A stretch of DNA of 64,000 bases from Entomortierella parvispora E1425 (lineage: Eukaryota; Fungi; Mortierellomycota). Both the position numbers and the translations under genes were made by a program. The notes below the pieces were generated by a model that saw only the letters and a program-made list of their open reading frames with translations, did no database searches and was not told where the DNA came from. The stretch covers positions 806,001 to 870,000 of the forward strand of contig BQFW01000003.1 of assembly GCA_020891255.1 (NCBI GenBank), in the 5' to 3' direction. The stretch's first letter is position 1. Each line of letters begins with the position of its first letter. Shown piece after piece: positions 9,794-36,977 of this stretch.

Positions 9794-11154
9794 TCATATA
9801 TTCGTCTTTTCTGTTTCCGCCTTCAAGATGGTTTCGATCACGAATCGGCGATAAAAGTACGTTCTGTCCTTGGCCGTGGCAGCATCTGACAACTCTACCT
9901 CAGAGCGGATCAAGTCCTTGAGGGCCTCGGGTCTTTCTCTTGGCACAAACAAGTTCCAATAGCAGATTCTGGCATCCTTGGTACCCTTCTTGTGGATGGC
10001 TTCCAAGAAGGTCTTGAACAGATCTTCTCCCATCCACTCAAAGATATCTGAGAGGTTGTATCCATCAAACTCGCCACTCTCCTCCGATTGAAGGTACTTG
10101 AGCACATCGGCTTGCTTCAAGGTCACGCGATCGATCCTAGACCGGATCGTGTCATAGTTCTCTCGTACCAGATAATCTGGCAAAGAGTTCTTGCCCGCCT
10201 GCTGGCCAGTGAAGACATACTCGGCGTAGAAGTTGTCCTGAAGAGGAATGTTTCTGATGCCGTTGTTGATCTTGCCCAAAAGGAAAGCGCCCACGTCAAG
10301 ACGAACGTGCTCGAAAAACTTTGGATCACGTCCAAGATGTCCCAGTGACATTTGACCAAAGAAGACACGAGTACCTGCACGCCAGATCCAAGTGTTCCAG
10401 ACAGAATCAAAGTACTTGATCTGCTCGGGTTGGTTCTGACCATTCAGTAGTGTTCGGGTGGCGGCCTGGGAGTGGCACAGGGGAAGGACGTACTTCCTGT
10501 AGAGACCAAAGAACCGCTCGAGACGGCCAATGTGAATGATCTTGTTGCGGATCAGCTCCAGGTTCTCGTCCCAATACCGCCGGTGCTCGGCATTGGTCAA
10601 CGCCACGCGGACCTTGTCCTGGTAAAGATGGACCCGTCCCTCAACCCCAATGTCGTGGCCATTAAACTCAAAGCCAAGGAGCTGGGTGAACTCTTCGTAT
10701 TCCAATGTCTTGTAGGCAGCAATCTTCAAAGCGCACAAGGCCAACTGAGCGGGGCTGAAATCTGGAAGACGAGATAAAAAAAAAGTGAGTGAGGGGAGGA
10801 ACAAAATAAAGATTTTCGCTTTTTGATTGGCGTCCATTTCTTACCGATGGCAACAACTTCACGAGCATCGTCAAGGAGAAGTGCAAAAGCATTGTCACCA
10901 GCAGAAGCGATACTGAGGACTCTGCTTTGGGGCTTCAATCGGAGACCCTGGCGCAAGAGGCGGGTGTCCTCCCAGACCTGGGAATAGCGGATCTTTGAAA
11001 AGTCGACCGTTGCCTCTACGGTGGCATCTTTGCTGGACTGGACCGTCTTGCGACCCAGGGATTCGTGATAGAGCTGGACTAGCGTCGAGATGATGCGGAT
11101 ATGAAGAGGCAGAGCCTTCTGTGGTGCAGCTGCCGTTGTTGATGTGGTCGTCAT
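9794..11154 (-). CDS. Stand-alone BtaA/DUF3419-family SAM-dependent 3-amino-3-carboxypropyl-transferase-like protein, about 425 aa (exons 11154-10845, 10761-9794)
   Basis: IRYSQVWEDTRLL, RVLSIASAGDNAFALLL, spliced VVAIDFSPAQLAL, NLSDIFEWM and RICYWNL are DUF3419/BtaA-type motifs. No separate BtaB methyltransferase domain. Confidence 0.8.
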
Positions 11155-12178
11155 GTCTTGTCTTTCTTTTGTTTCGTGAGCGATTAAGTGTTTCCTTGGT
11201 TGAATAGAGAGAGAAAAGGGGAAAGAGAGTAAAGTTGAACTTTTTATTTCCTCAGCTTGAAAGGAGGGTGATCAGCTTCACATGCGACCGTTATTCTTCC
11301 CTGATGGGTGGTCGGAGGTATGTGCGGTCGGCACTGCTCTCTCTCCGTCCAAGGTGCTTAATGGCGAGAAGAGGTGTCGGCCCTCTTGTGTCAGTTTCGT
11401 CTTTCTCGCTTGATGGCAAGACCAAGGCTAGTTCTTTTGTGCATTCCATGTCCGCACTGAATTGAAAAAGAAGCCCAAAAGATACAGGGGGACACATGTC
11501 GCTCACAATTCATGAATCATGAACCAGCCCACTCCAAGAAATGAACAAACAGACAGCTGCTCTCGTCTTAACTCAGTTAACTTAATTGAAAGGAGGATCA
11601 ATTGAATCGCACAGAATGAAAGCGCCATCGAACCATGTCCGAACACAATCATTCTTTACCATTTGGAGAGATACATCTGCTTGCCTCTTGGTTGCATGCA
11701 CGCTTGCGTCTGTGCCTGCGACCTTGATCCACAAAGCGTTAGCCCCGTTATCTGCTGTTGTTTCCTCTTTCTGTCCGCCAAAACTCATACTGACGTTGAA
11801 CTGCGTCCGGCACAGTCAATGCATGGCCGACAGCTCCACTCCATCCTCGGTCGGCTCTGTATTCTTCCGTTCACATTCTTGCTTCATGGCATGGTCCTTC
11901 CTCTTTGTTCTTCACACTGCCTCTTGTCCTCCTGATTCCCTCTTCTTTTTACGCCCAATCTTTCAGCTCGATCGCCATCCATGCATTATAACCACTTTTA
12001 ATGACCCTCGCCACTGGACAGCTGACCTCCAACTCTTATTCATATTTCCCTCCCCTGCAATCTAACGACCCCCCTCCACATCAAGAACATTCATTTTAAA
12101 CCTCACTTGCCCAACGAGCGAGTAACGTCCTCTTCACCCCCTTCTCTACCAACAAGACACTACGCTAAAGCACTCAGG

Positions 12179-13600
12179 ATGTTGACCAACCTTCACAGCA
12201 GTCATTCAGACTTCCAGCAGGGGACTGTCCGTCCCCTGCCTATGTCCGCCGTTTACAACAAACAACAGTTTATCTCGCAGTTCGCGTCCCTTCATCATCT
12301 CAGCACACAGCCAGCGCTTATCCATCAGCTTTTGACGACGAGGCTACCCAATATGTTTGTAGAGTATTGGATCCTCTATGACGATTTCAATCAACCCATT
12401 GCCTGTGCGGCTGCCAACACGGTCATTTCGGACATGTCAGTGGGCTATGTGGGCCTGTTTGAGGCCAAGGATGAGCTGGCTGGCATCTCAGTCCTGAAGG
12501 CCGCCACAGCGTGGCTGCGCGGCGGCGGTCTCCAAGAGTTTGAACCCGTGCGTCAGATCCTGGGGCCGGTCAACTTGACCACCTGGCTCCAATACCGAAT
12601 TCGAGTCGATGAAGATCCAGCCCAGTCCATGTCCTTTGAACCCAGACATCCGCGGTTTTACCAATCGTGCTTCGAAAAGGTACAGGTCGTTTCCTTGAGT
12701 TATCTCTTTTTGTTGTGGAATACTTGACTAGACTACTCACTGGCATCTCGTTGGTAGGCTGGGTTTACCAAGGCTGTTGATTACTACACAACGTTTTTCG
12801 AGATTGATCAACTGATCCACGGCTACAGCTCTTATGTTGGCAGAGACACGGTGGAGGATCTGGGCCTGTCTCTGCAATATTGGAACACTCTCAACTTTGC
12901 GGCCTCGCTTGTGCCCGAGCGACACCCAGGATTGACGGACGAGGACAATGTAGCGAGGCGAGTTTATGATCTCTCCATTGAGCTCTTCCGTGGCAAGGAG
13001 CTTTTTGACGAGTCCCTCTCGCGAAATCACCATCGGCAGCTTGTCTTGAACGATATGATTTCCCGACCCGAGGTCGACAATAGTTCATTATTGGATCTGT
13101 CATCGTTCCTGCGGGATCCAAGAACGGGAGAGGACCTTGGATATCTTGCCTGCTGGATTGAGAACGGTACAACATTGGTGTTAAAGACAGTCGGATATGT
13201 GGAGAAGGTCCGAAAGACAAAGGTCTTTGCTATGGCGGTCCTGGAGACGTTGAAGCGGGCCAGGGACCATTGGGGTTGCTCCAAGGTGGCATGTGCGTTA
13301 ATGAATGAAAGCTCGGCTGGTCTGTCCGAGCGCGTCGGCGGCGAGAGCATTCGCCATGTTTACCGCCTCTATTACCACCAACTCTCCGATCCCAGCTCTG
13401 TTAGCATGGCAGCTGCACCAAAGACAACTGCAGCGACAACAGACAAAAAACACCATGGATTGAAAAGGCATCCAGCCGCGGCTACGGTCCAGGTATCATT
13501 GGAGGTTTCAGGTCCACAACGCCAGCAGCAGCAGCAGCAGCAACAACAACAACACCTCTTTCACCGACGACAGCCTAAAAGACCTATGGCTCGACTTTGA
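12179..13600 (+). CDS. GNAT-fold-like protein resembling bacterial YghO-type proteins, about 447 aa (exons 12179-12679, 12758-13600)
   Basis: GYVGLFEAKDE...VLKAATAWLR...ILGPVNLTTWLQYR...SFEPRHPRFY...AGF pattern. A GT..AG intron joins the two ORFs in frame. The start could instead be the later Met (MSAVYN). Confidence 0.6.
13523..13552 (+). repeat. (CAG)6(CAA)4 polyglutamine microsatellite in the GNAT-like C-terminus
   Basis: Directly visible; encodes Q10. Confidence 0.9.
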
Positions 13601-13869: not shown

Positions 13870-16788
13870 ATGGAGCCACCACCGCAGGACAAGGACACAT
13901 CAGGAACAGGACTGGAATCACTCTCATCCGATAGTGATGATGATTGTACGAGGGATTGAAAACATGCCCGCTGGATGCATCAGACATCACTTGTATATGA
14001 GACTTACCATGGAACGCCCTTTTTTTCCTTGCTCTTTTGTTCTATGCAGTGCGCCAACTGGAAGAAATCTCGCGTCTGAAAGCGCAGCTGGAGGCTAGAG
14101 TTTTGGAGAAGCAACGGAAGAAAGCCATGGCCAAAGCTTCTTCATCTAGCGATACTCAAGTGGCTCCACTTCCAAGCAAAGAAGGTCTTACGGATGGTGT
14201 TCGAGAAGGAAAGACTGAACCATCGTCTGCACCCATCGAGGTCAATCCGTTCATGGAGACAACCCCTGCTCCAGAACAGGGCAAACAGCGAGCAATCTCA
14301 GGACTCAAATCAAAACGACCCGTAACGACTCCTCCAACTGTAGGCACTCCCTTGATCTCGCCTGGGTACCATATACCTGTCCGTGATCCCGGATTCAGAA
14401 CGCCTTCCCCTCCACCTCGTAGCCGATACGACAACTCACCATCATCAGGAGCATATACACGGTCAAAGAAAAGGCAGCACAGCCCATCGCCTTTACCTCG
14501 ACAAGCGCCCATGTCCGCTCAGCTTGTGAGGAGACCCGTGGCCGTGCCTGTATCTGAGGCTCGGAGACTCTTTGCTGACCATACAGGTACAGCAAATGCT
14601 CCAAATGCGACCAGTCAGCCAGTTTCATCTCCTCAGTCCGCTAGCTCCTCACAGTCTCTCCAGCCGTTGAGGCCGACAGGAACGTCGACTAGCACCCCCA
14701 GCAAACTGGACGATTTCGAAGACTTTGAGTTTGAAAACTTTCCTAGTGATGACGACTTTGATGTCTTGTCGCCTGTAAAGCCCAAAGTGGTCCCTCCTAC
14801 TGTCTTCGAAGATGATCCTTTCAATCCCGTAGAACCGGTAAAGAAAGCACCAGTGGTGGCAGCCACCAGTAGACCACCTGGAGGCAAGTCTACAGCTGTA
14901 CGGAATATAACTGCGCCGAGTCAGGCACCTCGTGGGATGGCGACGACATCAGCGATAACGACGGCAAGCGACATAGTTGACACGGACCCTGTTTCTGGTC
15001 TTCGGATACTGTAAGAACAATAGAGTCTCCTTTTCTAGTGGCGGGTTTTTTTTTGGTCTGACCTATTTACTGACTCCCTTTCCCCACCCTCCAACCTCTA
15101 GTCATCGTGTTGTCCCAAAGGAAGAACTCGCACAGTTGACACAGAGTGCTCGAATTATACCCCTGAAAAACTACGAGCAGATCCGTGAAAAATGCAATCG
15201 ACCGACCATTGGCTCGGCGCCCTCTTACTCTAAACAGGACGAAAACAAGGAAAACTGGGGTTTGACAGGTGTCATTGGGGCGAAGTCAAAACCACGCAAG
15301 ACGGCTCAGAACACAGTGCACAGCTTGTTTCGGCTGTGCGACTTGAGCGGAGCCATAGTGAACTTGTTCATGTTCAAGCCAGTGATGGATGTGCACTACT
15401 CCAAGTTGCAAGTCGGTGATGTCGTAGTGGTCCTCAATCCTGACGTGCTCACTCAGGCAGACGTAAGTATTTCAACTGTGGCGTGGTTGGAGAGTTTGTT
15501 TCGAAGTATGAATCTACAAGATAACAAAACTCAAAAATGATATCTCTTTTTCTCTCTTTTTCGTTATAGCGATCAGGGCCAGTGGGGATCAAGGTTCAAC
15601 AGCCGGAGGGCATCTTCCGGATTGGCAAGAGCAAGGACTATGGATTGTGCGAGGCTGTCAAGCTGAACAATGAGAATTGCGGCCTGATGGTCGACAGGAG
15701 GGCATCCATTTACTGCACTCACCACATCATGACGGCAACAGACAAGCAGCGCAACCAACGTGGAAGTCTAATTGCCGGGACGAGTTCAATCTACGACTTG
15801 GAAAAGAAAAGACCAGGCGTCCACACTGCCTCCTCCACCATGCCAATTCGAATCGGAGGTCCTCAACACACTGCGCGCCGAAAGATCATGGATCCTGCCT
15901 CCACCAAAGATACGACTTATATATTCGATAATGGCAGTACAGGCTCTTCTTCGATGACTCAGCCGACCAAAAAAACCAGAACGAACGAACCCGTAGATGA
16001 CGACTTGTCCTTGTTCTTGATGAGCCAAAATAATCCTGGCGGTCAATATCTACGACAGGCCAAGAGTAGTGGCGATGTGACCTTGGCTAAAGAATTGACC
16101 TCTCCAAGTAAGAACTTCCACCCTGCTGATCAAGGACACTCTTCACCTTATGTTTGAAAAATACTCTCTAACACTCTTTTACTGTATCTTGTCCGTAGAG
16201 CGATCGACAACACCTAAAGAAATGTTCCCAGCAGAGATGGTTCGGCGGATGGGATACGATCCAGTTACAGGACAATTCGTACCTGGAAGTCCACAGCGCG
16301 GCCAGGACGACCCTGAGGCACGAGAACGCTCCATTCGGATGCTGGCGGAGAGAGTCAAGTCGCCACCGAGTGGAGGTCGTATCCGGGATTTCATGGGCAA
16401 AGGAAAAATTTTGACACCAACGAAACGGAAACTGGACTTTGGGCAGCCAGACGTTGCGTCCAAGAGTGCTAAGCTGCCCTCTGGTCGTGAGGTCTCGGGC
16501 AGCGTCTTCTTTGATGACGCAGAAGATGCGCCAGAGAAGGACAAGGGTGGTGAGACAAAACGGTGGATCGACCTTGATGATGGTTCCAGTAGCAGTGGAA
16601 GCGACGAGGAGGGACGGGGCCAAAGTCCTTTGCTTTCATTACAGGAGAAACGGGCTTTGAATCTCCGGAATGCAAGTCTATCAAAGAAACTTGCAGCCTC
16701 ATCGACATCCACTGCCTCCCCAGTCAAGGCAACAACAACCGTCCCTCTTCAGAAAACACTTCCGTCCAAGAGCGAACCCAAGGAATAG
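13870..16788 (+). CDS. MCM10: MCM10 DNA replication factor, multi-exon
   Basis: OB-fold segment (NWGLTGVIGAKSKPRKT...LCDL...VNLFMF...LQVGDVVVVLNP) and CCCH zinc finger (IGKSKDYGLCEAVKLNNENCGLMVDRRASIYCTHH). Confidence 0.88.
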
Positions 16789-20900: not shown

Positions 20901-21939
20901 GCGCAATCCAGTGTCTTTGTTTATGGGGCCCTCGTTTTTGGGCGCCATCCCGAGTGTTTATTTTTTTTTTTTTTTTTTTTTTTTTTGCATGCTGGCGTTC
21001 TGTGTTGCGGGAAACATCAATTGGTGCTGAGATCCAACAGTACTTTCGCTTCATTTTTTTTTCTGGTGGCGACGATAGCTAAAATGAACTAAAGTACCAG
21101 CGCCAGAGCTGTGTCTAACGCTCTGAACGAGGAGATGCCGGCTCTTCCTCCAAATGCAGTGGCCAGGCCCACCAGGTTTCTCTTTGTCCATGAACAAACA
21201 ACGGAGGCACGTGTTGAAAGCGATTCGAAGCGCGGATCTTGGACTCGGTCTGGTGTCCAGACCGTGAGAGCTTTTCCATCGGATCAAAGAGTGAAGACTC
21301 GAGCGGGATGATCAGTAGCTTTGTCCAGTAGCTTTGTCTGTTAGCCAGATGAAGGTCATTTATTTCGCAAGCTTGTTTTCCCAGTGAGCTCTCGGGTGTG
21401 AGCACCACGCTGAAGGAACAACGAAAAAGGTCCCACAAACACGCGCAAGGTACATGGCTCGAGTACCACGAGTGTTTGCGATTAAATTCAAGGTCAGATC
21501 GAGCGATGGTTGTCATTCATCCCACGAGCACATGCGTTGCGTCGATCGCTGCTCATATTTAGCAAAAACGCAAAAACGTCGCTTCTCTGAGTTAACGTTG
21601 GTCGTACGTTAACGCACTCACCAGTTACCGTAAGTCCGAGGGATGTGTGGTAAACAGAGCATTCTCTTTATTCGAATGAATGAATGGACCGTTTGTCCAC
21701 CCCAAGTATGTACAGTATGGGCTTTGCAATGAAGAAAGAGCTCTGTCACCGTTGCGGTCAAAAAGGGACGATCATTTGCGCACACAAGTTCACCTTTTCT
21801 TCATCCCTCGCTTTTTTCTTTTGATTCTTTCCCCTGCACCTCTTCATCCTTCTTTCCACTCGTCTTCACCGCATCATCATACCAGTAATAATCACTCCCG
21901 CGCTCACCTCTGTTCCTACAAGCTGCTAATATACCAATC

Positions 21940-24900
21940 ATGAGTCCATCCGTTGCAGAGGTAACCAATCCTCTCATTCCAATACTCGTCGTCGACTGAA
22001 AGCTGTGAAGTGCTTCACGATCTCTGACAAGACCCTCCATCCTCGCACAATAGATCCCAAGACCAACTACCAGCGATCCAACAGGAGCGGCCAAGGAGAT
22101 CGCCGTCTCACAGCTTCATGATTTCCTCTCTGGAGGATTCCCCGATATCTTTCGATGGAGTCTCCATCGAACACCAACCTCCGAGGAACTCAACGGGAAC
22201 CTTTGCAGTCTGTTCAACGCCATGTTTGTCCATTTCAGAGACACTTTACCTTCGAGCGAACCTTCACCCGATTGCTTCATCTTCACAGAACCCGGCAAGC
22301 AGGCCGTGACTTTTGATGAACTTTGCAGCCGCATCACTCATTTCACCCAGATCTTGGCTCAGCAAGGCAACCAGAAGAACAAGTCATCCACTCAACCCTT
22401 GAACACAGGAGACAAGGTCTTGATCCTGTCTTCACTGGGAGTAGACTTTTTCGTGGGGGCGATCGCCTGTCTTGCGCTGGGAGCGACCCTGATCTTGCTG
22501 GATCCGTACATGGAGCGAGCCAAGATGAATGTGTGCATCGAGTCTGTTCTTCCGATCAGCCATATTGTCACGAATATGAGGCTGACCTCGTTCAAGAAGT
22601 GGATCCTCTCCAGAGCTGTACCCGCGCTGAAGAAGATCCCGAATGTGGTCGAGATCCCAGTCAATGTTGAGTAAGTTGAACTAGCTTTTTTTGTTGTTGT
22701 TGTTGTTCTGTGCGAGATGATGGATCATTCTTGAACACAGTCTCAAGGTGACAACAAAAAAAATCACAGACTCTGACCCTCCATTGCCCCATGCCACCGA
22801 ACAAACAATAGTAAAAAGATCCTCTCCGCCGTGCCAAAAACTATTCCAGTGGTCTCCGTCCCTGGAAACACGACCGCATTGCTCTCATTCACAACAGGAT
22901 CAACTGGCAATCCCAAGCCCATCCGCCGATCGCACGACTACCTTCGAGCTCAAACCATCGCCGTCTTTTGCCAAAGAGAGATCAAGGCTTCGAGCGCCGA
23001 ATTCCCTTCTACACAGCCACCATCCACGACCGACGCCACAGAGACGAAGGCGACAGCACCGCACAAACCTGTCAAGGCTGTCACCAACCTTCCTGTGTTT
23101 ATCTTTGGCCAGATCATGCTTGGTTACACGACCCTGATCCCGGATAACTTTAACCCTGCAGGCGTCAACCCAGCCCCCCTTCTGCAGGCCATGATTCGAC
23201 ACAACGTCCAGGTCGCCTTTGGATCCCCGGCTTTCTTCCTTCGCTTGTTGCAGCACCTCGAAGAGACGAGTGGCGTGGATCAGCATGGAAAATTCTTGAG
23301 CCCTCTGCCTGTCCGTGTCCTATGCTTGGGCGGTGCTCCTGTTTTCTCGTCCGAGCTGGACATCATGAGACGCGGTGTCAAAGGCTCGGCCTTTATCTTT
23401 TATGGCGCCAGTGAGGCCGAGCCCATCTCCAAGATCCGCGTTGAGGAGCGCATCCTACTCGAGGCCAACCCTGGCTCGAACAAGGAGACGGCTCAAAAGA
23501 CCAGCAAGCGCTCAAACCGCATCTCGCGAATTGACTTTTCTAACCCAGAATCTGAATCAGGATTCGAGGGTGGCAATGTGAACGCAATCTGCGTGGGCCA
23601 TGTCAACTTGGATGGTGGATTTGCACACACAGCCATTGCTCCCCTCGATGGCGAGGTTCTCAGTGGTGGTGAGCAGTTCTTGGAGCAGGGCCATATTGGC
23701 GAGATCGTAGTCTCAGGCCCCCATGTCCACATTACGACCACTTCGGATGACGATCGCATCCTCCACGAGAAACCATCCGTTGCTAGCGGTGGAAAGGACC
23801 GGATTTGGCTCCGGACTGGAGACTGCGGTTACCTCGATGGAGCTAACCGTCTCTGGCTTGTGGGAAGAGCATCCTGGGTAGTAAAGGAGAACGCCGAAGA
23901 TAACAGCGTCGAGGGTGGATTGAACTCTCTTCGGTACTGGCCCATTGCAATTGAACGCTCTGTCCTCGAGACTTTTGGTCCTTCACATGGAGTGACCTAT
24001 GTGGTCTTCATGCCCTCGGGAACCACCAAGAAGCCAGCACTATTTGTTGAGGCACCACAAGGACTCCCCCTGGCTGCTCATTCATTGATCTTGGAGCATT
24101 TGCAAGAGACCTTTGATGTTCCTGTGGACGAGCTGCACGTTTTCCGCAAGTTGCCTAGAGACAAGCGCCACGCATCCAAGATCAACACAATGGCTTTGAG
24201 CAAGATGATCAAGGACAAGAAGGCCACTGACAAGATTGTGGTATTACGTAGCAACATTTCCGGCACCTTGAACGACGGTCTCCGCCGTGGGTTCACTGCC
24301 ACTTCGCTCAAGAGTTCTGATAGTTCCCTGGACTTGGTGGCTCGCAACACACTCGCTAACACTCAGGTTGTTTCCACCGAGCCTCTGGAGAACCGCTACC
24401 AGTTTTCGGATGCTGATCAGGTCCAGTTTTTGTTCGCCTGGCACCCTGCTCCTGTACTCGCGCAGTTTGGAGGCGGCAAAGCCAAGAACATGGCCACGCT
24501 CACGAATCTTGTCAACAAGGTCCAAGGTGTCAATGCCACTGTGCCAGCTTGGTTCTGTGTCTCGACTGAAGCATTCAAGTCCTTCTTGGTCGAGAATCAC
24601 TTGGATTCACAGATTGCGCCTCATATTACAACGGCAGAGGGCTTAGAGGCTTTCCATGATGCACTGACGAAGAAGGTCATGGCTGCACCTCTTTCTTCTG
24701 CCATGTTGAAGGAAATCACGGCTCTGATTGACCACCTTCGCTCAACCTCAACCTCCTCTACGACAACCAAGCCCTACTTTGCCGTTCGATCATCCGGAGC
24801 TGACGAAGACTCTGTCTCGCACTCGTTTGCTGGACAGTTTGATTCCTTCTTGTACCGCCAGTCGACAGAGGAGATCATCGAAGCTCTCAAAAGGTGCTGG

Positions 24901-27776
24901 CTCTCTGCATTTGCACCCCGCGTCATGTCTCATCGTTTGGCCTGTGGTCTACCCGTCAACAATGTTCGCATGGGTGTTGTGGTTCAAATCATGGTTGACT
25001 CTGAGTCCGCCGGTGTGGCATTTTCCCGCCACCCACTGAACCCCATCAGTGCCAATGTTGCTTTAGTTGAGGCTGTCTGGGGCCAAGGCGAGGCGTTGGT
25101 CAGCGGTGCTGCAGAACCAGACTCGTTCGAGGTCGAGCGTGGTCCCAGTGGCAAGGTCAAGGAGACTCTAGTCCCTAAACCAAAGATGTGGATGCGAAAC
25201 GCTGGTCAAGGATCTAATGGTGCAGATGCCACCGGTCTCGTTGCAGTGGATGTCCCTGAGCCCAAGGCCAGCGCTGCTGCCTTGACGGTCGATCGTGCTC
25301 GCGCTGTGGGCATGACGGTTACTGGACTCGAGTCTTTGATTGGCATGCCTGTCGACTTTGAGTGGGCCTTCCAGGAGGAAGACTCAACCCTTTACTGTCT
25401 TCAGGTCCGCCCAATCGTCAACTTGCCTCCATCTTCCTTCTTCCTGGCGACAGACCCTACTGCTCATTCCGAGGTCTCCTCGGAGACAGAGCACTCTGAG
25501 TCTGCGATCTCCAGCGATTCATCCATCACCATTCCATCGTTGACCAAGACTCCTAAGGAACCCAAGGGTATCAAGAATGATCTGATTGACATGACTTCGA
25601 TCGCAGGCCGCGCCATGGACTCCCTTACAGCGGCACCTCAAGGAATGAATGTTACTCTTTGGGACAACTCCAACATTGTCGAGTCCTACTCTGGTGTCAC
25701 CACTCCGTTGACCTTTTCGTTCGCCTCCTACAACTACCGTATCGTTTATGAAACGATGCTCACATTCTTGGGCACGCCGCCCAAGTTGGTCCAGGCGAAT
25801 GAAGATGCTCTCGTCAACTTGCTCGGCTACATTCGAGGCAATGTCTACTACAATCTCATGAACTGGTACCGTCTGCTGCTCCTCGCTCCCCTCGGCAAGT
25901 TCTCGGACCCGAAGCACATGGAGACCATGATGGGTGTCAAACAGGGCCAAGAAGGAAATGCCGATATGGAGAAGGAATTTAAGAAGATCTTGGACAGCCG
26001 CTACAAGTTCAATGCCTGGCATCGGACCAGACTTGTGCTCAAGTACATCTCCGCCTACAGAAACATTGACCGGATCGTCAACAAGTTCTTTGCCAACTTT
26101 GATGCTTTTTACTTGGCCGGTCGCGAGATGGATTTCTCAGTCATGTCGCTGCAAGAGATCTCAACCTACTACCGCAAGAACGCGAGTACTCTTTTGAGGG
26201 ATTGGAAGGCCCCAGTCATCAATGACCTTTTAGTCATGGGTTTCTTTGGCACTCTCAAGTCGTTCATTGCTAAGCATCTAGTTGAGCCCAAATCTAAGGC
26301 ACCCGTTGAGGGTGCAGCTGCTCCCACCGCTGAGGAGGCAGCGGCAGCGGCAGCCGATGCTGCGGCGGTGGATTCTCTTCAGAATGATCTTCTCTGTGGA
26401 GAGGATGTAGAGTCGGCCAAGCCGACCAAGATGTTGATGGAGATTGCAAAGACAATCGACACTACAATCGAGTACCCAGCTCTGGGCGCTTGGTTTGTCG
26501 GACACAAAGACGAGATTTTGAAAGCCATCAAGCCAGAGGAGAACCACTGGATCTTGCGCTCCACAATTCTGAAGCGCTCGTTTGTGAAAGCAAGCGAGCT
26601 TTTGGCTGGACTCAGAAAGACGGAGCCCGGAAAGGATCTTGAACAGCCACCCGTTCAGGTGGTGGCCGACGTTTTGGCCATGATCTTGGAGTTTTTGGAC
26701 TCTTATGGTTTCCGATGCATCAATGAGCTCAAGCTTGAGGAAAAGGACCTCAACGATGATCCCGGTATGTTTTATTTCACCTCTTGTTCCCCAGTTTACA
26801 ATCCGAGAAATGTCGGCTGAACTCTTTTTTTTTTTTTTTTTTTTTTTGTATTCGTGTAGCCTTCGTGATTGATGCTATTGCAGGTTACGTTCGCACCAAA
26901 GCCTATGAGGTCGAGGACTTGGACAAGCGTGAACAGCAGATCCGTGCTGCTGCTGAAGCACTGGTACACCAGAAACTTAAGGGAACCCAATTGGTGCTCT
27001 TCCTCTGGCTCTTGCGCAACACTCGTCGTGTGGTGAAGCATCGTGAGAACTTGCGTTTCGCTCGCTCCAAGGTCTTTGGTGTCATGCGTCGTATCTTCCG
27101 AGGCATGGGTCGTCAGCTTGTTGCCCTTGGAGCGCTCGAGACTGAGCAGGATGTTTTTTACTTGACAACGGAAGAGCTCATGTCCTATGTTGATGGTCGT
27201 GCCGTTTCCCGGGATCTCAAGGCTCTGACTCGACTTCGCAAGTCCGAGTTTGACGGTTACCTTGCAGATGCAAACGCCCCTCCAGAGCGCTTCGTCACCC
27301 GTGGTGCCGCGGGTGTGTACATGTGGTACCCTCATATCCTCGCAGACCTTGATCTCCTCAAGGACACCGAGGACTCGAACGGCCCTCCAGAGCCTGGTGT
27401 CCTCAAGGGAGTCTCTTGCTGCCCCGGTGTGGTCGAAGGTGTGGTTCGAGTCGTCAAGGACATCACAGAGACAAGAGATTTGGACGGCGAAATCTTGGTC
27501 ACGGCCAGGACCGACCCTGGCTGGGTTCCTTTGTATCCAATGTGCTCTGGTCTCTTGATTGAACGTGGATCACTGCTGAGTCACTCGGCTGTGGTGGCCA
27601 GAGAATTGGGTCTGCCCACGATCGTGGGCATTTCTGGTGGGCTGATGAAGCGCCTCAAGACTGGAATGAAGATCCGAATGGATGCTGGAAAAGGCAAAGT
27701 CTATATATTGGACGAGTTGGAGGCCTTGGAAAAGGAAAAGCAGTCAGGAGAAGGCGTTGAAGTCGCTGCTGCTTGA
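21940..27776 (+). CDS. Fusion enzyme of about 1,835 aa: OleC-like adenylation (AMP-binding) domain + PPDK_N ATP-grasp + central substrate domain + C-terminal phospho-His swivel domain (exons 21940-21960, 22054-22670, 22812-26764, 26860-27776)
   Basis: Adenylation motifs SFTTGSTGNPK, FYGASE, WLRTGD, LPRDKRHASKI. PPDK_N motifs GGGKAKNM, AVRSSGADED...SFAGQFDSFL, GQGEALVSG, DFEWA...LQVRPI. His domain GSLLSHSAVVARELGLP (His codon 27582-27584). The four exons sum to 5,508 nt, in frame. Confidence 0.87.
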
Positions 27777-28072: not shown

Positions 28073-30390
28073 TTAAGCCTTCTTTCCGAGGAGGAGCAAG
28101 AGGCCGATGATGCGGAAAAGGATGTAGTAGGCAAGCAAGATCAAGACCGCGCGCCACTTGGTCAACCAGTCCAACTGGTCCAATCCAAAGTAAGCGAGCG
28201 TGGCGGTGCCCTTGGCCGAACCATCATGGAACTCGTTTTGGAGCAAACCTTGGAAGGCCCATTGGTAGTAAGAAGCCCAGAACGCCCAGATCCATCCACG
28301 AGGGATGTCGGTGCGACTGACGATAAAGCCCGAGAACAGCATGGCCATCGTGTTGATCAACGAGAGCAGGTTCATACCGACTTCTGAGTTCTCGGCGCCA
28401 GCTCCAATAGCAGCGATCAACGACAGGGCGACGTTCACAAAGACGGCGACCAGGACAAAGTAATAAAAGATAGAGCCGTGGAGTCCAATGAGGTAATAAG
28501 TGATGACCACAAAGATGATGGACAAGATCGTGTAGGACATGGTCTCGACGATGGTCTTGGCAAAGAAGTAAGAGGAGGTTCTGTACATGCCAGCAGCCCT
28601 CTCACGAAGGAAGAGGCTTCTCTCGATGATGACTAACAATAGATGAGATGAATGAGGAAAGGAAGGTTCTTGTGTTAGTCAATGACTTGGAATGGTTCTT
28701 TCCACAAACACTCCCCAAAGCAAACTTACATTGAGGCATGGCGGAAAAGGTCATTGTGGCCAAGAACGATGTGATAAAGAACAGAGCAATTGACTTGTTG
28801 AAGCTGGTCGCACCCATTTCTGGACGATCCTTCAAGCCCGAGAACAAAGAGCCCACGACCAATGCAAAAATGATGTGAATGACCAGCGACGCTTGGAAGA
28901 TGGTTGGATGGCGTGCCAAGTTGGTCAAGCTACGCTTGGTGAGCAACATGGTCTGGGTCAAGGTAGTAGTTGCAAACTCGGTGGTGTACTGCTTCTTGAA
29001 CTGGTCCAACAGAACGTTGCGCTGTGACTTTTCAGTCGAGTTCGCATGCTGGGTCAACAGCTGGGTCAAGTGGGCTTCGGGGTTGGTGGCGACATGGTCG
29101 GCATACTTTTTGGCAAAGTCTTCTGTTGATTCCAATGACTCGGCATGAGGGGAGTTGTCTTGGTGCAGAGTAATCAAGTCCACTATTCGTGAGACAGTGT
29201 GGAAAGGACTGTTAGAGGCTATGGTCAACCGAAACTCGTAGTGTAAACACAACAAATAGTAGACAACTTACAGAAATAATCGGCAACATTCCAGCCAACG
29301 GGGCATTCATGACCCAGAGCCTCAAAGTAAGCCGCGGCAGCATGGGCCTTTCCAAAGTAGACGACCTTTCCTTGCGACAAAAGAAGCAAGTCATCAAAGA
29401 GCTATCCAATTGAGGGACCATGTTAGTACACAGCATGCTTCAGCTTGAGAGGCAAGGCGAGAGACTGCAAGGCTGTTACCTCATAGATATCGGAGCGGGG
29501 CTGGTGGACAGTCAAGATGACGGTGCGGCCGCTAGTAGCCAGGCCCTTGATGGCATTGGCAACATTCAGGGCATCGGTGGAGGACAGACCTGATGTGGGT
29601 TCATCCAGGAGCAGCACGCTTGGACTGGACAAGAGCTCGATACCGATGGTCACACGTCGCTTCTCACCGCCAGAGATTCCGCGAATGACGGCACCTCCGA
29701 CCTTGGTGTCCTTGATATGGGTCAAGTTGAGTTCCTGCATCACAGCGTAGACACGGTCCATCTTTTCTTTGTTGGTCATGGAGCGGGGCAGTCGCATCTT
29801 GGCTGCAAATGTCAGTGTCTCCAAGACGGTCAAGGTCTCGATAAAGTCTAATTGATCAATGGAACATCATGAAGAGCAAAGTCAATGTGTTGTTAGAGAG
29901 TGATTCTTTTGCCTTGACCAGGGTCGACTCGGAGAGTCAGCTTACCGTCTTCTTGGGTCACATATCCGAGGAGACGCTTGCGCATGGAACCGTACTCCTT
30001 GATCGGCACATCGTTCAACGAGATTTCGCCCTGGAGTTTGCCAGTGTTGCGAACCTGACGATCAGCGAGCAGATCCAAGAGCGTGGTCTTGCCTGATCCA
30101 CTAGGTCCCATGATGGCAAAGACGCGACCAGGAATGGCCTTGATGGCAATGTCGGAGAGGAGAGCCCTTTGCACATTAGGGACCTTCTTGAATAGGGACC
30201 TCTTTTCGCCGTCCTTGAGGGGCTCTTTGATGGTGACCTCGTACTGGAGGTTGGTGACGGTGAGGGAGGCAGGGATGAAAGGGACGCTCGAGTCAACAGT
30301 GACAGCGACCTCGGCATTGTTGGATGTGATGGAGGCAGAGGTGCTGGAAGCACTTGCGGTGCTCTTTTCTTCGTCGATGTGCTTGGTCAT
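28073..30390 (-). CDS. ABCG (White-family) half-transporter, NBD-TMD, multi-exon
   Basis: Walker A GPSGSGKTT, signature ISGGEKRR, Walker B VLLLDEPTSG, H-loop TVHQP and a hydrophobic C-terminal TMD. Confidence 0.93.
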
Positions 30391-31616
30391 TTTTTAAGGA
30401 ACAGGGTATATGTGAAAGTCAAAAGTCCGTCTCGGGGTATGGGTGCAGATCAAAAGAGAAAAGAAAGAGGAGAAATCAAGTTGGACTGGCAGAGCAGCGA
30501 AAATTGTGGAGGAGGGAAAGACAAAACGAAAAGAGAGCTCGAGATGATGAGTTGGGCTGAGGGGCAAGACGGAAGCAGGAAAGAAAAAGGGAAGGAAGGA
30601 AAGAAGGATAAAGTGGAGAAAGAAGCACGCACTTATCGAGCAAAATGAACTCCCATCCATGGTCAGAGAACTCGCCGCCCCGGCTCTGTATCACCTTGGA
30701 GAGCTCAGACGAAAAACCGCCAGAGTGGTGGCGAGGCGCTTGGGGCACATTGCAAACCCATCATAGCGATCCATTGTTGTTGGTTGCTGCTATTCTTCAT
30801 TGGAAAATCGACGCTGATAACGGTGGACCGTTGATGTCCTCATCTGGACAGAACAATGGCAACAGTGCATGTGCGCACTCTTTGCTTGTGATGTTGGCTG
30901 AGGCCGAACTTGCACTTGATTGCACCAGCGCAGGCGTGTATAGAAGATAGAGTACTCGACAAGTGCGAAAAAGACGGATCAGCACAAGCATGGAAGGCCG
31001 AGGCAGCGATAAGCAGGCAGTCCAGTCATCCTGTCCTCCGTCAAGGTGAGATGCAAGGTCTCGTCAATGTTCTGCCTCACATGAAAAAGAAGACTGGAAA
31101 TAAAAGAGCGATGGACCGTCGGGGTACACTGCTCAGGTATTAAAAGAAAAAAAAGAGTGCTTTCTGAGAAATAACGTATTCGAACGACTTAAGGTAATCT
31201 CAATTCAATGCCAATTGAATGATTGAATGAGCATTGCCATTGTTACGCAGCGATCCTTGAACCTTTGTCTCTTTGCTTCTTTGTTTGTCTTCATTTCATT
31301 TTCTCCTTCATCCCTCTTTTTTTTTCTCTCTCTCTCTCTCTTCATCTGTCTTCTGTTTTTCCTTCCTCTCCACTTGCTCTCCACTTGCTTGCCCAATCCA
31401 CCTTCAATCACGACCACGTCTTTATCTTTTCACGATCCACTCTCCCTCTCTGAACGATCCGTTCCGTGCCAACATCGTCATCATCGACCCGTTCATTCTC
31501 GTGTCCATGCCCCGACTCTGCTACGCCACCTAAGCAATTCTTTTTTCCGTCCTTCATCTTTCTTTTACCTCTCTTTTCTCTCTCTCTTTTCTTGCTCCTC
31601 ATATTTGAACTACAAC

Positions 31617-32816
31617 ATGGAGAGTCACAAGTCTAAAGAATCACTGGCATCCTCAACAGCAAGCAGTCGTCAAGTCGATGTCTTTGTTCAATTCTCAGGG
31701 TAATTGGTGTCTCTTGCTCCATTGCCGTTGTCTTTTCTGTTCTGTGCACAGACCGACGAGTTCCTGACATGCCAACGCTTCACCTATCTTCTAGTTACAA
31801 AAACTGGCTCAAGTTCTTTGGTGAACGTGTCGCCTTATTCGTCTATCTCTTGACGGCAGCAGGATACACTCTCTCTGGATTCTATGCTTTGGCCACAGGC
31901 AAAAGCCTCGCCGGCGTTTGGCCTTATGTTATCTGGATCGTCATCATCGAAACTCTCTTCCTCGTCACCCTCCGAGTCATGGACGATCTGAAGGACGTTG
32001 ACACTGTAAGTCATGAGCAATGATCTGCTTTACTCTGACAACCAAAAAAAAACTATGAGAAAACTCTGACAATAACCCCCTCGCCTCCCCTAGGACATCC
32101 TCGCTCACCCTGAACGTCCATTGCCCCGTGGTCTGGTCACCGCCCGCGAGGCTAGCTTTGTGGTCCACGGCTTGGTGCTAATCCTGATTGCGAACGGAAT
32201 CGCTCTTGCGATTGTCAAGAACCTTGCCTCGGGCCTTCTTTGCATCGCCACTACTGGATACTATTACCTCATGTTCAAGGAGTTTGGCTGCGGTCACTGG
32301 CTCAGTGCACGCCCTATCCTCTATGTGATTACTCATCAGCTTGTAGTCTTGCTCATGGTCCTCTTGCCCGTGGCAACGTTCTGGGGTGCCTCTTCTCTGA
32401 AGGGTATCTTGGCCTGGCATGTGGCCTTACTGCAGTTTGGAGGATCGTTCACGTTCGAGGTCTGCCGAAAGCTGGACCCAACTGCCCACGTGGCTCTTAG
32501 CACCTATTTGGTGGCATATGGCAAATTCAAGACGTTCTTGATGATCTTGTTTGCTGTCGCGATCGGTGCCTGGGCGTCGTACGTGATGGCGGTTGAGATC
32601 ATCATGTGGCCCTTCCTGGGCTTCCTGTTGCTGAGTGTCTTGGTCTTGTTTGCAGGCCAGAGAACTCCGGGAACGCCACTGGCAGAGGGAGAGAAGGCAC
32701 CCAAAGGTCACAAGACCGTCGAGTTGATCTGCACGCTGATCACACTCTTGACTATGTACATTGTCCCCATCAAGTTGTGGAGCGGCGTTCCCAAGACGGC
32801 GATGCGCACTTTCTAA
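31617..32816 (+). CDS. UbiA-superfamily intramembrane prenyltransferase-like protein, about 338 aa (exons 31617-31699, 31795-32005, 32094-32816)
   Basis: Splicing restores LRVMDDLKDVDTDILAHPERPLPRGLV (Asp-rich motif plus RPLPxG). Multiple hydrophobic helices. The exons sum to 1,017 nt, in frame. Confidence 0.82.
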
Positions 32817-33056: not shown

Positions 33057-34921
33057 TCAATCTGCCAATCTGACGCCGACATGCACTCCAGGGACAGGCT
33101 TTAGGCTGACAGACCATTGCCATGCTATTTCGCCCTTGGCCGCTTGCAACTCGGGTGTTTGAACAAATTCAAATTGGTTCACAAGGTTGGCCAGATGGGT
33201 CTTGATCTCTAGTGTTGCCATCTTGTTACCGATGCAACCTCTTTTGCCGTGGTAGAAGGGAAAGTAACAAAGTCCATTTGGTGGTACGTAGGGCGGGCAC
33301 GGTTTGTCTGTGGACAGCCAACGATCTGGGTTGAATTCCAAAGCATCGGGCCCCCAGATTTTGGGGTCGCGTTGGAGAATGAACATGGGGATCTGCAGGT
33401 TGGTACCGGCTGGGACAAAGAGAGGCTCTTGTCCGTAGGCGCGGGGAAGATGGTCATCTTCGACCGATACTCGGAGATTGAGCTAGGGATAGGGGTTGTG
33501 TATATGTTAATCAAGAGTGATGGACGAAAGCAAGATCACACGAATGGTCAATCGGGTTCTTACAGGAATTGGGGACCAGAGGCGAAGACTTTCGCGGACA
33601 ACGGCGTTCAAGTATGGGAGCGAGTTCAAGTCATCATACAAAGGCGAGCCGTTTGTGTCCTTGAAGAGCTGTCTAGTTTCTTCTCGAAGGCGGGACTGGA
33701 TATCGGGGTTGCTTGCTAGCTGATAAAATGTCCAGGACAGGGACGCAGATGTTGTTTCCTGAGCATTGACCAAACAAAAAAAAAAATCAGTTTGTGATAC
33801 CATGATCGTCCAGCTCAAGAGACTGTGGAACAAGGACGTACATGTCCAGCGAAAATGGCTGTAAAGACATCGTGTCGGATCTGTAGATCCGAGACGCCCT
33901 CGCCTACGAGCTGATCCACCAGTAACATGGTCAGCATGTCTTTCTTTTGACTTGTGGCCCCCTCATCTGTTGAGAACTCTCCATTGTGGTCTTCTATCTC
34001 TTTGATCAGGGCCTGCTTCCGGGTCCTCACAATCTCATCCATGGACGCGTTAAAATGTCGGACCGCCGTCCATGCGCGCCGATTTGTCCTTGTCGGGATC
34101 CAGTTGGAGAATGGCAACAATGTCAAAAGTGAGACCTTGAAGGACTCAACAATGATTCTATAACTCTCGAAATCTTCCCCGATCGGACTCTTGATCGCGT
34201 CAAAACCTTGGCCAAGGGCAAACTCGCCGATCGAATCCAAAGTCAGGCTGTAGAACCAAGGTTCGAGATCTACGGTCTTGTACAGCTTGCCATTGAGCTC
34301 CCATGCTGTCCCTGGACTTGAGGTTGCCTTGACCTCGTCTTGGATCGGTAGAACGCCGCCCACCGGCTCTGAATCTTCTGCGCCCGCGATCGCCGCTTTT
34401 TTCTTCCATTCGTCGACCAGATCTTGTGCGACTCTTTGGAAAGCGACCGTCATGGATTTGAGATAGGTGTGCTTGAACCCCTTGGCGAGATATTTCCGAT
34501 GAGACGTATGCTCTGCACCCTTCATCGACAAGAGCGATGAACCCAGGTTTTGTTCAAACATGTCTTCTGTGCCTTTGCTCTTGAGCCAGTTGTCGTTGGC
34601 CTTGCCGAGGACATAACCGACCGTGACCGGATCGGACGTCAAGAGTGTCAAGCGGGTGAACCAGTAGTAGCGGTAAATCGAGCCTGGGTATTGCATTGCC
34701 CAGTCGTACAGTGCCATCATTGGTTTCTTTTTGGTCAGGCCGACCATATTGCCGAGGAACCAAATCTTGGACGGCTTTGGGCCAGGAATGTGAGTGAGTG
34801 GATCAAGGACAAAGGGGTAGAGCCATGTCTTGTAGATGCCATAGGTGAGCACCGTTGCCAGGGCTACTGTGAGGGAGAGGACCGGAGGGGCCTTTTCCAG
34901 GGATGATTTGATGAAGGTCAT
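33057..34921 (-). CDS. Cytochrome P450 (microsomal type), multi-exon
   Basis: N-terminal membrane anchor followed by IPGPKP, I-helix AGH/ETTS split by an intron, ExxR (ESLR), FNPDRW and heme motif FYHGKRGCIG. Confidence 0.93.
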
Positions 34922-36977
34922 TTTTTTCTTTTTGATCTTGGATCTTGGGGGTCTTGGTCTTGGTCTTGGATCTCTGTCTGTGTGTGCGCTTGTCAAAACT
35001 GAAATTTGAACACTCGGTCGTCTTTTGTCTTATTTGTTCTCGAGTCGCAGGAATGAAAGGAAAGAAGTCGAGGAGGAGGAGGAGACCTGGACGGCAAGTC
35101 CAAATGGAGCTTGACGGATGATGCAAAAGACTGGGGAGGTGAGGGGATCGCACAAAGGGCCGAGACTCCGGAGTCAGAGACTGTCTGTGTCAGATGCAAA
35201 CTTGATGCACAGTTTGCGTAATGATTGGGAGTGTAAAAAAAAAGGAAAGTCCAAAGAAAACAAAAAAGGCTCGACACAAACCAAGCCCAAGCCCAAACGA
35301 CAAAGACATGTGGGTGCGCAACGCACAAACACCGACAGAGTAGAGAGCATCCAACTGTCCATTGTATTGATGATGGTCTTAAGTGAAAAGATAACGAGTT
35401 AAGAGCAGAAGGGACCGTTCAGGTACAGGAAACTCAATTGCGACCTACGTTGAACTTTTAATTTGATAGGCTGTTTGCTTAACTTTTTCGCTCATTGTTT
35501 GTATCCCGTTCCATGTTTCTTTTAGAATAACGACCACCAAACAAACGAAAAACAAGCCAACTAAAGTCTGAGCTGCGCGGAATTGCAAACCTGTGAGCTC
35601 TCTCCCCGGATCTTGCAGTCTACAAATCGACACAATGGAACCGAAAAAAAGCGCGTGCATGCATGTTTGTCTCTTCTGTGGACGAACAATTGAGAGCCAA
35701 ATCGGGGTTATTCTTTCAATCATTTAAACACACTGTGGTCTGGTTCTTTTTTTGTTGTTTAGTTTTCAGCCTTGTCCATTTATGACAACTCCCATGCCGT
35801 CCGCGGCTGAGTTTCCAATGTCCGTTAGATCCGGTGGAAGAATGATGAAAGTCTATGGATCGAGAGTCTGGAAAGTAATCAGCCTCCATTCAACCAAAGT
35901 CCGGTGAACGATTCCTCGGCCCGATGCACTCCATACGCAGGGTGCTGAAATGAACAAGGAGGATGCCGGACGCCACAGTGCGGGATTAACAAAAACAGTT
36001 CAGAGTCCACGGACAATAATTCGGGCTGACAATCAAATGAATCCCGTCCGCAAGTTCTTTGATCAGGGCTGAGGATTACACTCCTCACACACATCCTGTT
36101 TATTTTCCTCTTTGGCGCCGGAAATTGGCGGTACCCAGTCCACTGAGAGAGCAAACCATGAAGAAACATGGATGGGTCATTTTCCATCCCGCACAAATGG
36201 TGTAGAAGATAAGCCCATTCGTTAAAAGTAGGTTGCCTGTTCGACGGGGTGGCGAAATGGGGGTAGGTACAAGAAGAAAGTACCAATTGAGATTTTGTGT
36301 GTTAACAACAAAAAGAATTTGCTTAAACGAAAACGGACTCTCTTTCCATTTAGCACATGTCCATGGTATGGGCGTCTTATTCTTTCATCTCCTTACATTT
36401 GATTCAGTCCATTGACTGACTCAACCATGACATGTCTACCACTTGATCGGCAGTGTCGGCAAAGATAACGCTTGACACCCGGGGACATGGGTTATTTTGT
36501 TTCCTTGTTTTGTGTTTTCCTCGATCAGTTCATGGTCTGGCAGAGGTCTACGCATCTCGTCTCTGCGTAAAAGGGACAGGCGAGGATTCCAAAAGGAATC
36601 GCTCACTCTCCATTTGAGCAGCGTCAACTTAAAACAGACAATTGACTTCCGGTTCAAGTCAGTGCGTGAAAGACAAGAGATAATGGAGACGAATGGGAAG
36701 AAAAAGTAATAAAAGGCCGCGACCACTGCTCGTCGTGTGTACGACAAACAGTTTTTTTTTCTCTTCTAATTTGGCGCCACCAAAATTCACCACCATCACA
36801 TCCAAAGCGACAGGTAATGATCTCTTCATGAGGAGAATGGCATCCAACGAAAAACACACACATTGGAAACAATCACAAACACGCAAGCTAACAGCCCATT
36901 GTTTTCTATTTCCATCTCTTTTGTTAGCCATTGGACTCACTTCTGAATCAAACATCACCATCACATACAAAATAACA

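Follow-up and report, generated by a model that had tools for sequence, protein, structure and literature searches.

A predicted adenylation-dikinase fusion protein of Entomortierella parvispora and the prokaryotic operons that carry relatives of its two halves

We analyzed a stretch of 64,000 nucleotides from the soil fungus Entomortierella parvispora E1425 (contig BQFW01000003.1, positions 806,001 to 870,000; this whole stretch is called the window, and positions are counted from its first letter). It contains a gene for a fusion protein, in which a predicted adenylating enzyme of the ANL superfamily is followed by a predicted dikinase resembling rifampicin phosphotransferase (RPH). Both halves are complete and keep all of the residues that are invariant in their families, and they are carried by one open reading frame (ORF) and one transcript. 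The main new result is that, by sequence similarity, the closest stand-alone relatives of both halves are operon neighbors in prokaryotes. On balance we favor the reading that the protein is a bifunctional activating enzyme that would use two ATP, made of fused partners from a conserved operon-type pathway centered on a UbiA-like membrane protein.

The model of the fusion gene, rebuilt from the sequence, has four exons at 21940-27776 on the forward strand. Its coding sequence of 5,508 nt gives 1,835 residues with one stop, at the end, and the three introns (93, 141 and 95 nt) each begin with GT and end with AG. The exons are as follows.

21940..21960, + strand: exon 1, Met1 to Glu7 (ATG at 21940, GT donor at 21961; joint in contig X10, described below, at 21958/22052, recorded as "GT..AG (cut +2)")
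22054..22670, + strand: exon 2, N-terminal part of the ANL domain (Pfam AMP-binding, E 9e-5; NCBIfam PRK09274, E 1e-7; contiguous in X10)
22812..26764, + strand: exon 3, 3,953 nt, with the remaining ANL domain, the linker, the ATP-grasp domain and most of the central domain; holds the domain junction
26860..27776, + strand: exon 4, end of the central domain, phospho-His swivel domain and stop (Pfam PEP-utilizers, E 1e-18; NCBIfam PRK06241.2-2, E 1e-84)

The preliminary description of this DNA had proposed a four-exon frame of about 1,835 residues with the junction inside exon 3, and all of its coordinates and motifs were recovered in the rebuilt model. Exon 3 rests on a single uninterrupted ORF of 1,329 codons (22831-26820) that has both AMP-binding and PPDK_N matches. 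Pfam matches AMP-binding to exon 2 and to the opening 200 residues of the exon 3 ORF, PPDK_N to that same ORF (E 5e-61), and PEP-utilizers to exon 4. The short first exon agrees with the N-termini of the orthologous fusions, which read MSPAV(I/T)EV. Of the invariant columns, 139 of 139 in a 15-row dikinase alignment and 47 of 47 in a 12-row ANL alignment are kept in the window protein, and differences between strains in the gene fall mostly at third codon positions. Together with the full-length orthologues described below, this conservation greatly exceeds what chance would produce. Intron 2 (at 22680-22713) and intron 3 (at 26820-26848) have long runs of T and (GTT)n-like tracts.

One contig of 7,979 nt in sequencing run X10, from a related strain with the same species label and about 86% DNA identity, covers both halves of the gene. 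It aligns at 21925-21958, 22052-22670, 22816-26762 and 26860-27740, and its own positions are continuous over all three introns (84 to 85, 706 to 711 and 4660 to 4663). DNA-type contigs from the same sample (X4 and X5) retain intron-sized inserts between the exons. We infer that the X10 contig is the spliced mRNA form, the library type not being on record. It runs without introns through both halves, so that separate transcripts, which would have contradicted the preliminary description, are not what is found in this related strain.

A splicing artefact is excluded as the source of the fusion by the single exon and ORF, by a spliced contig that spans the junction, and by conservation in two phyla of fungi. 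There is next to no chance that two neighboring genes have been misread as one through annotation or assembly, since the junction lies in the continuous ORF, is bridged by the spliced contig, and recurs in more than 30 independent assemblies from two phyla; the single weak point is that no RNA run with the exact sequence of the window is listed, a search of runs of any type having returned DNA-type runs only. The two-gene artefact is refuted by the continuous ORF, which leaves an internal promoter or cleavage of the protein as the sole remaining possibility.

The preliminary description had treated the fusion as a Rosetta stone linking two ATP-dependent activation steps. This idea is strongly borne out by the bacterial operons in which the nearest stand-alone relatives of both halves occur together. 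In Bdellovibrio bacteriovorus (CP169237.1, locus L001), the dikinase homologue has 48% identity over 660 residues, and its operon contains the dikinase, two ANL genes, a GNAT-like gene, a cytochrome P450, an MFS transporter, and a UbiA-like gene, with a DUF3419 gene nearby. Loci L004 and L005 have the tight order DUF3419-ANL-UbiA-dikinase-GNAT. The nearest stand-alone relatives of the adenylation domain (P0125 and P0131, about 525 residues, with 28-31% identity over 90% of the query) lie in clusters with HMG-CoA reductase (HMGR), UbiA, dikinase, DUF3419, a protein of 472-484 residues, GNAT-like and ANL genes, with MMPL alongside in one of them. Identities between the window proteins and those of the bacterial operons are 38-48% for the dikinase, 28% for the ANL enzyme, 35% for UbiA, 31-35% for DUF3419, and 30-37% for the GNAT-like enzyme. 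The two settings differ in that the bacterial genes are separate or paired otherwise and are joined by DAGK_cat, reductase, HMGR, and MMPL or Lol-type exporter genes, while on the fungal side the ANL enzyme and the dikinase are on one polypeptide and the exporter is of the ABCG type.

A scan of one genome per species found at least 590 relatives of the dikinase, and the best 80 dikinase-match loci were taken for a census of genes within 10 kb. These come from Bdellovibrionota, Gemmatimonadota, Planctomycetota, Verrucomicrobiota/Lentisphaerota, Acidobacteriota, Myxococcota, and two archaeal metagenome-assembled genomes (MAGs). Since many of the contigs are incomplete, the following counts are lower bounds.

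UbiA-like: 60 of 80 loci
ANL (OleC/PRK09274 clade): 57 of 80 loci
DUF3419: 44 of 80 loci
GNAT-like (double-GNAT acyltransferase): 43 of 80 loci
DAGK_cat: 20 of 80 loci
u484: 15 of 80 loci
MMPL: 13 of 80 loci
P450: 12 of 80 loci
HMGR: 10 of 80 loci

The bacterial clusters occur in two flavors with mutually exclusive accessory genes. Type A, in the Bdellovibrionota, adds a DAGK_cat lipid kinase, a NAD_binding_4 protein of the fatty-acyl reductase type, a 677-residue dehydrogenase, and LolA-like/MacB exporters, and a formyltransferase often replaces the GNAT-like gene. Type B adds HMGR, MMPL, and u484. Across the 80 loci, HMGR never occurs with the NAD_binding_4 reductase, nor u484 with DAGK_cat. 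The protein called u484 is a membrane protein of about 480 residues encoded beside DUF3419 (L006:9562-11013, - strand) that has no Pfam or NCBIfam match. Language-model features (score 0.91) liken it to CdsA, phytol-kinase, DUF92, and dolichol-kinase proteins, which we take as a lead only.

Other fusions occur within the same gene set. In six loci (L015, L020, L023, L027, L029 and L076) ANL and UbiA are joined in a single ORF, and in eight (L048, L050, L051, L053, L055, L062, L078 and L083) an alpha/beta-hydrolase is fused to the N-terminus of the ANL enzyme. In a third kind, the 774-residue protein P0247 (L091:2469-4793, metagenome contig ERZ1764468 k141_463723) has DUF3419 at residues 11-325 and the dikinase ATP-grasp domain at residues 441-743, and its gene adjoins a UbiA gene.

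Two archaeal contigs were seen to bear the module. One, from a Methanobacteriota MAG (L034, Tara Red Sea), has ANL, UbiA, dikinase, GNAT-like, HMGR, DUF3419, u484, and MMPL genes, and the other is from a Thermoplasmatales MAG (L082). The L034 dikinase groups with those of the Gemmatimonadota in our phylogenetic tree, which suggests gene transfer or mis-binning.

The domains of the window protein are given below. Structural comparisons used the AlphaFold models of the Mortierella alpina orthologue P0002, which is 83% identical over the exon 3 query.

22306..24243, + strand: ANL domain, residues ~92-690 (end-to-end alignment with the operon ANL of L006, 28% identity, E 4e-54)
24244..24453, + strand: Ser/Thr-rich inter-domain linker of ~70 residues (pLDDT below 50 at residues 697-765 of the orthologue model)
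24454..25443, + strand: ATP-grasp domain, PPDK_N (Pfam E 5e-61; tblastn to bacterial dikinases; fold match to the ATP-binding domain of RPH, 5HV6)
25642..27482, + strand, containing intron 3 (26765-26859): RPH-type central helical, substrate-side domain (Rph_4th, PF27448, in orthologues and bacterial homologues; fold match to 5HV1)
27483..27695, + strand: phospho-His swivel domain (Pfam PEP-utilizers; predicted catalytic His1772 at 27582-27584)

The core motifs of the ANL superfamily are all present in the N-terminal half. Motif A3 is TTGSTGNPK (residues 240-248, 22891-22917), A5 is YGASEAEP (410-417), A7/8 is RTGDCG (547-552) followed by LWLVGR, and A10 is LPRDKRHASKI (660-670, 24151-24183), with the A10 lysine as Lys669 (24178-24180). 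The model of this half in the M. alpina orthologue has a mean pLDDT of 75.6 with two predicted disordered inserts, and it has the two-subdomain ANL fold, matching ATP-bound MatB (4FUT) over the full chain and both subdomains with a target-normalized TM score of 0.79. In the linker that follows, 137 bases at 24239-24377 are replaced in strain X9 by an equally long stretch too diverged for alignment, and the linker appears to be hypervariable between strains.

The preliminary description had likened the A10 motif to that of OleC-type beta-lactone synthetases rather than to nonribosomal peptide synthetases. The likeness holds at the level of a wider clade. The motif (I/L)PRDxRHxSK is kept throughout the PRK09274/OleC-like clade. 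The top NCBIfam models for this half are PRK09274 (160 bits, cut-off 478) and two OleC models, and these models are also the best-scoring ones for the operon ANLs. The OleC models give only 82 and 71 bits, far under their equivalog cut-offs of 900 and 850. By these scores the adenylation half is a relative within the PRK09274/OleC-like clade and not a member of OleC. Further points of likeness to OleC and NltC are the JGI label of the nearest stand-alone ANL relatives, "olefin beta-lactone synthetase", and the N-terminal alpha/beta-hydrolase of some operon ANLs, which recalls the OleB-OleC fusions described for actinobacteria, although this domain has no OleB-specific match. Genes for the OleA thiolase and OleD reductase, the usual partners, are found neither in the window nor in the 80 bacterial loci. 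In the PDB, a single-sequence search with the adenylation domain gave no match at E <= 0.001, and a profile search returned generic ANLs only, with no OleC or NltC structure. As to nonribosomal peptide synthetases, Pfam finds only AMP-binding, PPDK_N, and PEP-utilizers in the window protein, with no carrier, condensation, or thioesterase domain.

The C-terminal half has the domain order of RPH, and it retains the catalytic histidine and the conserved ATP-grasp residues. The ATP-grasp domain contains GGGKAKN (residues 766-772) and VRSSGADED (871-879), and the central domain begins at WDNSNIVESYSG (1163-1174). His1772 lies within GSLLSHSAVVARE; alignments A1 and A3 show this histidine as invariant or nearly invariant, and the window protein retains it. 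The dikinase half of the M. alpina model has a mean pLDDT of 81.6. Listeria monocytogenes RPH is the only PDB entry that matches all three of its domains (5HV1, target-normalized TM score 0.73, E 1e-36), while phosphoenolpyruvate synthase (PEPS) and pyruvate phosphate dikinase (PPDK) structures match only the ATP-grasp or the swivel domain. A profile of the dikinase family matches RPH with E 1e-116. The preliminary description had assigned the domain order to RPH and PigC and not to PEPS or PPDK, and the presence of Rph_4th in the orthologues together with the whole-chain match to Listeria RPH alone agrees with this.

PEPS and PPDK share homologous ATP-grasp and swivel domains with the fungal protein, and orthologue entries in the databases bear their names, but in those enzymes the His domain is central whereas here it is C-terminal, and the window protein terminates 63 residues past His1772. 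Pfam finds no match to the TIM barrel that binds PEP or pyruvate (PEP-utilizers_C) in the window protein. A PEPS or PPDK of central metabolism was rejected on account of this absent PEP-binding domain.

The resemblance to RPH (5HV1/5FBS) covers the ATP-grasp, helical substrate, and C-terminal swivel domains, at about 18% identity. The fungal protein differs in its N-terminal ANL enzyme, in a disordered insert of about 50 residues after the ATP-grasp domain (seen in the orthologue model), and in its location in a biosynthetic-type gene cluster, whereas RPH is encoded by a resistance gene. It also scores far below the equivalog cut-offs of the NCBIfam RPH models (84-150 bits against 999-1700). 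PigC and RedH have the same domain order and similar scores: for the ATP-grasp and central part, PigC gives 167, RedH 153, and RPH 150 bits, and for the C-terminal part the values are 77, 86, and 104 bits. These too fall far short of the equivalog cut-offs of 1300 (PigC) and 1350 (RedH), and the window lacks the prodiginine and pyrrole pathway genes that would be expected nearby. PigC and RedH, unlike RPH, work in biosynthesis rather than in resistance.

Five partner homologues lie with the fusion gene inside a 25-kb part of the window, among them the UbiA-like, GNAT-like, and DUF3419 genes of the bacterial module.

9794..11154, - strand: DUF3419 (BtaA-like), two ORF pieces (Pfam E 4e-43 and 4e-15; 31-35% identity to operon DUF3419, E 4e-54)
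~11586..13600, + strand: double-GNAT-like acyltransferase (tblastn of the operon GNAT-like protein at 12257-13342, E down to 3e-17; the orthologue in locus L089 has 457 residues)
28073..30390, - strand: ABCG-type half transporter (Pfam ABC2_membrane and ABC_tran; also a neighbor in L089, L090 and chytrid locus L003)
~31227..32816, + strand: divergent UbiA-superfamily membrane protein (35% identity over 235 residues to operon UbiA, E 7e-31)
33165..34996, - strand: cytochrome P450 (Pfam p450; weak match to the Bdellovibrio operon P450; kept neighbor in L089 and L090)

The closest non-fungal relatives of the fungal UbiA-like protein are UbiA proteins of the Bdellovibrionales, and its first Asp-rich, diphosphate-binding motif is kept. 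Linnemannia hyalina and Actinomortierella ambigua have the same fusion-gene neighbors as the window, and in five more species, judging by locus-tag numbers, the UbiA-like gene is two or three genes away from the fusion. At the chytrid locus the fusion is flanked by HMGR, UbiA-like, GNAT-like, and ABCG transporter genes. The chytrid HMGR gene (869 residues, L003:6096-8900, JADGIY010000097.1) is directly upstream of the fusion on the opposite strand; the window has no HMGR. Searches of the window and the chytrid locus by tblastn for DAGK_cat, NAD_binding_4, the 677-residue dehydrogenase, the formyltransferase, u484, and MMPL found none of them.

Full-length orthologues of 1,800-1,843 residues with the same four Pfam families occur across the Mortierellaceae (67-83% identity with the exon 3 query), in the genera Mortierella, Podila, Linnemannia, Entomortierella, Dissophora, Lobosporangium, Actinomortierella, and Modicella; further genera of the family have partial entries. 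Three fusions of the chytrid type (36-37% identity) come from Blyttiomyces sp., Chytridiales sp. JEL 0842, and a Logan assembly. When a 681-residue query spanning the junction was compared with 1.84 billion representatives of clusters at 50% identity, two representatives among the matches listed crossed the junction, one from Mortierellaceae and one from a chytrid, and the other listed matches covered the ATP-grasp part alone. By this search the ANL-dikinase architecture is rare. The preliminary description had called it unfamiliar from eukaryotes, which is right in that the architecture is rare and uncharacterized, but more than 30 Mortierellaceae and chytrid entries are already in the databases, named "hypothetical protein", "phosphoenolpyruvate synthase", or "pyruvate phosphate dikinase". 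Our literature search found no description of an ANL-dikinase fusion or of the bacterial operon, and the AdenylPred preprint makes no mention of such clusters.

A phylogenetic tree of 102 dikinase sequences contained all of the eukaryotic rows in one clade (SH-aLRT 100). Within it, the Mortierellomycota and chytrids (support 99) were sister to sponges and two other eukaryote rows, and the whole clade was nested among bacterial clades rich in Bdellovibrionota. The tree came from a quick search with midpoint rooting, and compositional heterogeneity was flagged. The NCBI name for the sponge relatives of the dikinase is "PigC-like". Given the single eukaryotic clade and the unlinked, unfused genes of the sponges, the fusion most likely arose once, before the split between chytrids and Mortierellomycota.

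The chemistry we would expect of the protein follows from the behavior of its families. Enzymes like RPH convert ATP, substrate, and water to AMP, Pi, and the phosphorylated substrate by way of a phosphohistidine. The ANL half would use one ATP to adenylate a carboxyl group, with Lys669 acting as the A10 lysine, and the acyl-AMP would then be captured by a nucleophile, which in this clade may be a hydroxyl of the same molecule or else a partner enzyme, and not CoA. Another ATP would be cleaved to AMP and Pi by the ATP-grasp domain, and its beta-phosphate would pass to His1772; the swivel domain would then deliver this phosphate to an oxygen, that of a hydroxyl or an enol, on a substrate bound in the central helical domain. 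Gene context suggests that this substrate is a lipid or isoprenoid-type intermediate and that the phosphorylated product either serves the UbiA-like neighbor or derives from it. DUF3419 and the GNAT-like enzyme could add and N-acylate an amino-acid-like head group, and the P450 and ABCG pump could tailor and export the product, respectively.

The same logic recurs in the prokaryotic clusters. Acid activation is combined there with the dikinase and with a UbiA-like enzyme in which the first Asp-rich, diphosphate-binding motif is kept; reductases of the thioester type, kinases for lipid alcohols, transferases of N-acyl or N-formyl groups, BtaA-like S-adenosylmethionine enzymes, and lipid exporters complete the set. 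This gene set fits a membrane lipid or isoprenoid product bearing an N-acylated, amino-acid-like head group, and the occurrence of the same two enzymes as separate operon neighbors in bacteria points to an uncharacterized lipid or isoprenoid pathway. The preliminary description had further supposed that the two activation steps act consecutively on one intermediate, perhaps with channelling. This is possible. Other steps may intervene, since the UbiA-like gene usually lies between the ANL and dikinase genes and reductase and lipid-kinase accessories are common; the bacterial ANL is also fused to UbiA or a hydrolase as often as it is adjacent to the dikinase.

Several observations weigh against the reading of the fusion as part of a conserved UbiA-centered pathway. 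The chemistry of the module is deduced from family behavior and gene context, and the specific reactions of OleC, RPH, and PigC cannot be assumed for it because the NCBIfam scores are far under the equivalog cut-offs. The fungal UbiA-like protein does not reach the gathering score of Pfam, and the second of its Asp-rich motifs is non-canonical. A housekeeping gene, MCM10 (14037-16788, + strand; with an OB-fold and a primase zinc finger), splits the fungal cluster by lying between the GNAT-like and fusion genes, and the window has neither a reductase nor a second lipid kinase near the fusion. Sponges carry both genes, neither fused nor linked; clustering is thus not universal in eukaryotes, the sponge dikinase and OleC-like ANL being unlinked. 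Finally, the census used hidden Markov models built from four seeds and applied to stop-to-stop ORFs.

A more specific and tentative form of the UbiA-centered reading, which we think more likely wrong than right, is that the module is an ancient unrecognized pathway. Adenylation of a carboxylic acid would be followed, in clusters that have a reductase, by its reduction, and the RPH-type dikinase would next add a phosphate or pyrophosphate group, giving a leaving group for the divergent UbiA-like enzyme as a transferase of alkyl or prenyl groups. What results would be an exported lipid of a new class, with an N-acylated aminocarboxypropyl head group, and the pathway would occur in the predatory Bdellovibrionota, Gemmatimonadota, the PVC group, Acidobacteriota, marine archaea, sponges, and early-diverging fungi.

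It is unlikely, though worth serious consideration, that the dikinase instead acts like PigC, phosphorylating a carbonyl or enol oxygen transiently to drive a C-C or C-N condensation with no stable phosphate ester. PigC and RedH carry out such condensations with the aldehyde MBC, and the NAD_binding_4 reductase of the type A clusters could make a comparable aldehyde from the acid activated by the ANL enzyme. The PigC and RedH models score on a par with RPH for both parts of the dikinase, and the name given to the sponge relatives points the same way. The shortfall from the PigC and RedH cut-offs and the lack of pyrrole or prodiginine genes argue otherwise, as does the absence of the reductase from the fungal clusters in the tblastn searches of the window and chytrid locus, and the frequent pairing with UbiA suggests a phosphate or diphosphate leaving group for alkyl transfer.

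We regard a mevalonate-type route as improbable. The OleC-like half would close a beta-hydroxy acid such as mevalonate to a beta-lactone that decarboxylates to an olefin, and the dikinase would phosphorylate or pyrophosphorylate the distal hydroxyl, giving an isopentenyl-type phosphate for the UbiA-like enzyme. HMGR in ten of the bacterial loci and beside the chytrid fusion is consistent with such a route, as are the nearness of the ANL clade to beta-lactone synthetases and the OleB-OleC-like hydrolase fusions, but HMGR is missing from most loci and from the window, and the hydrolase domain has no specific match to OleB. The mutual exclusion of HMGR and the NAD_binding_4 reductase is better explained by generic thioester reduction. 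Fungi possess the classical mevalonate pathway, and a homoallylic diphosphate is a poor donor for UbiA enzymes. A replacement of the lower mevalonate pathway was downgraded to a minor explanation because HMGR is found at so few loci and never with NAD_binding_4.

Inactivation of foreign hydroxylated compounds by the dikinase, as RPH acts on rifamycins, with the ANL enzyme as an unrelated addition, seems very improbable: the closest solved structure is a resistance enzyme and an ABCG exporter and a P450 are close by, but co-occurrence with ANL, UbiA, DUF3419, and GNAT genes over several bacterial phyla and the two archaeal MAGs, together with the multiple fusions, is a biosynthetic signature, and the RPH equivalog models fall far short of their cut-offs.

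Antibiotic inactivation and the condensation step of prodiginine biosynthesis are the roles for which RPH-type dikinases are mainly known, and OleC-type ANLs are known from olefin and beta-lactone pathways. The value of the fusion is that it exposes a widespread, unnamed five-gene module, and the joining of the two enzymes in fungi, with their place in many bacteria as obligate neighbors of a UbiA-like membrane enzyme, points to a widespread undescribed pathway. The module supplies testable partners in its five core genes, alternative fusions, and exporters, and both ATP-dependent steps can be assayed in a single fused protein. Genetic tools exist for Mortierella alpina, which is used industrially as an oil fungus, and Bdellovibrio could serve as the genetic system on the bacterial side. 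The cluster is also a clean case of a gene set like that of a bacterial operon that would have been held as a eukaryotic cluster since before the divergence of chytrids and Mortierellomycota. If the proposal of an ancient lipid pathway is true, this would be the first biosynthetic role of an RPH/PigC dikinase besides prodiginine condensation.

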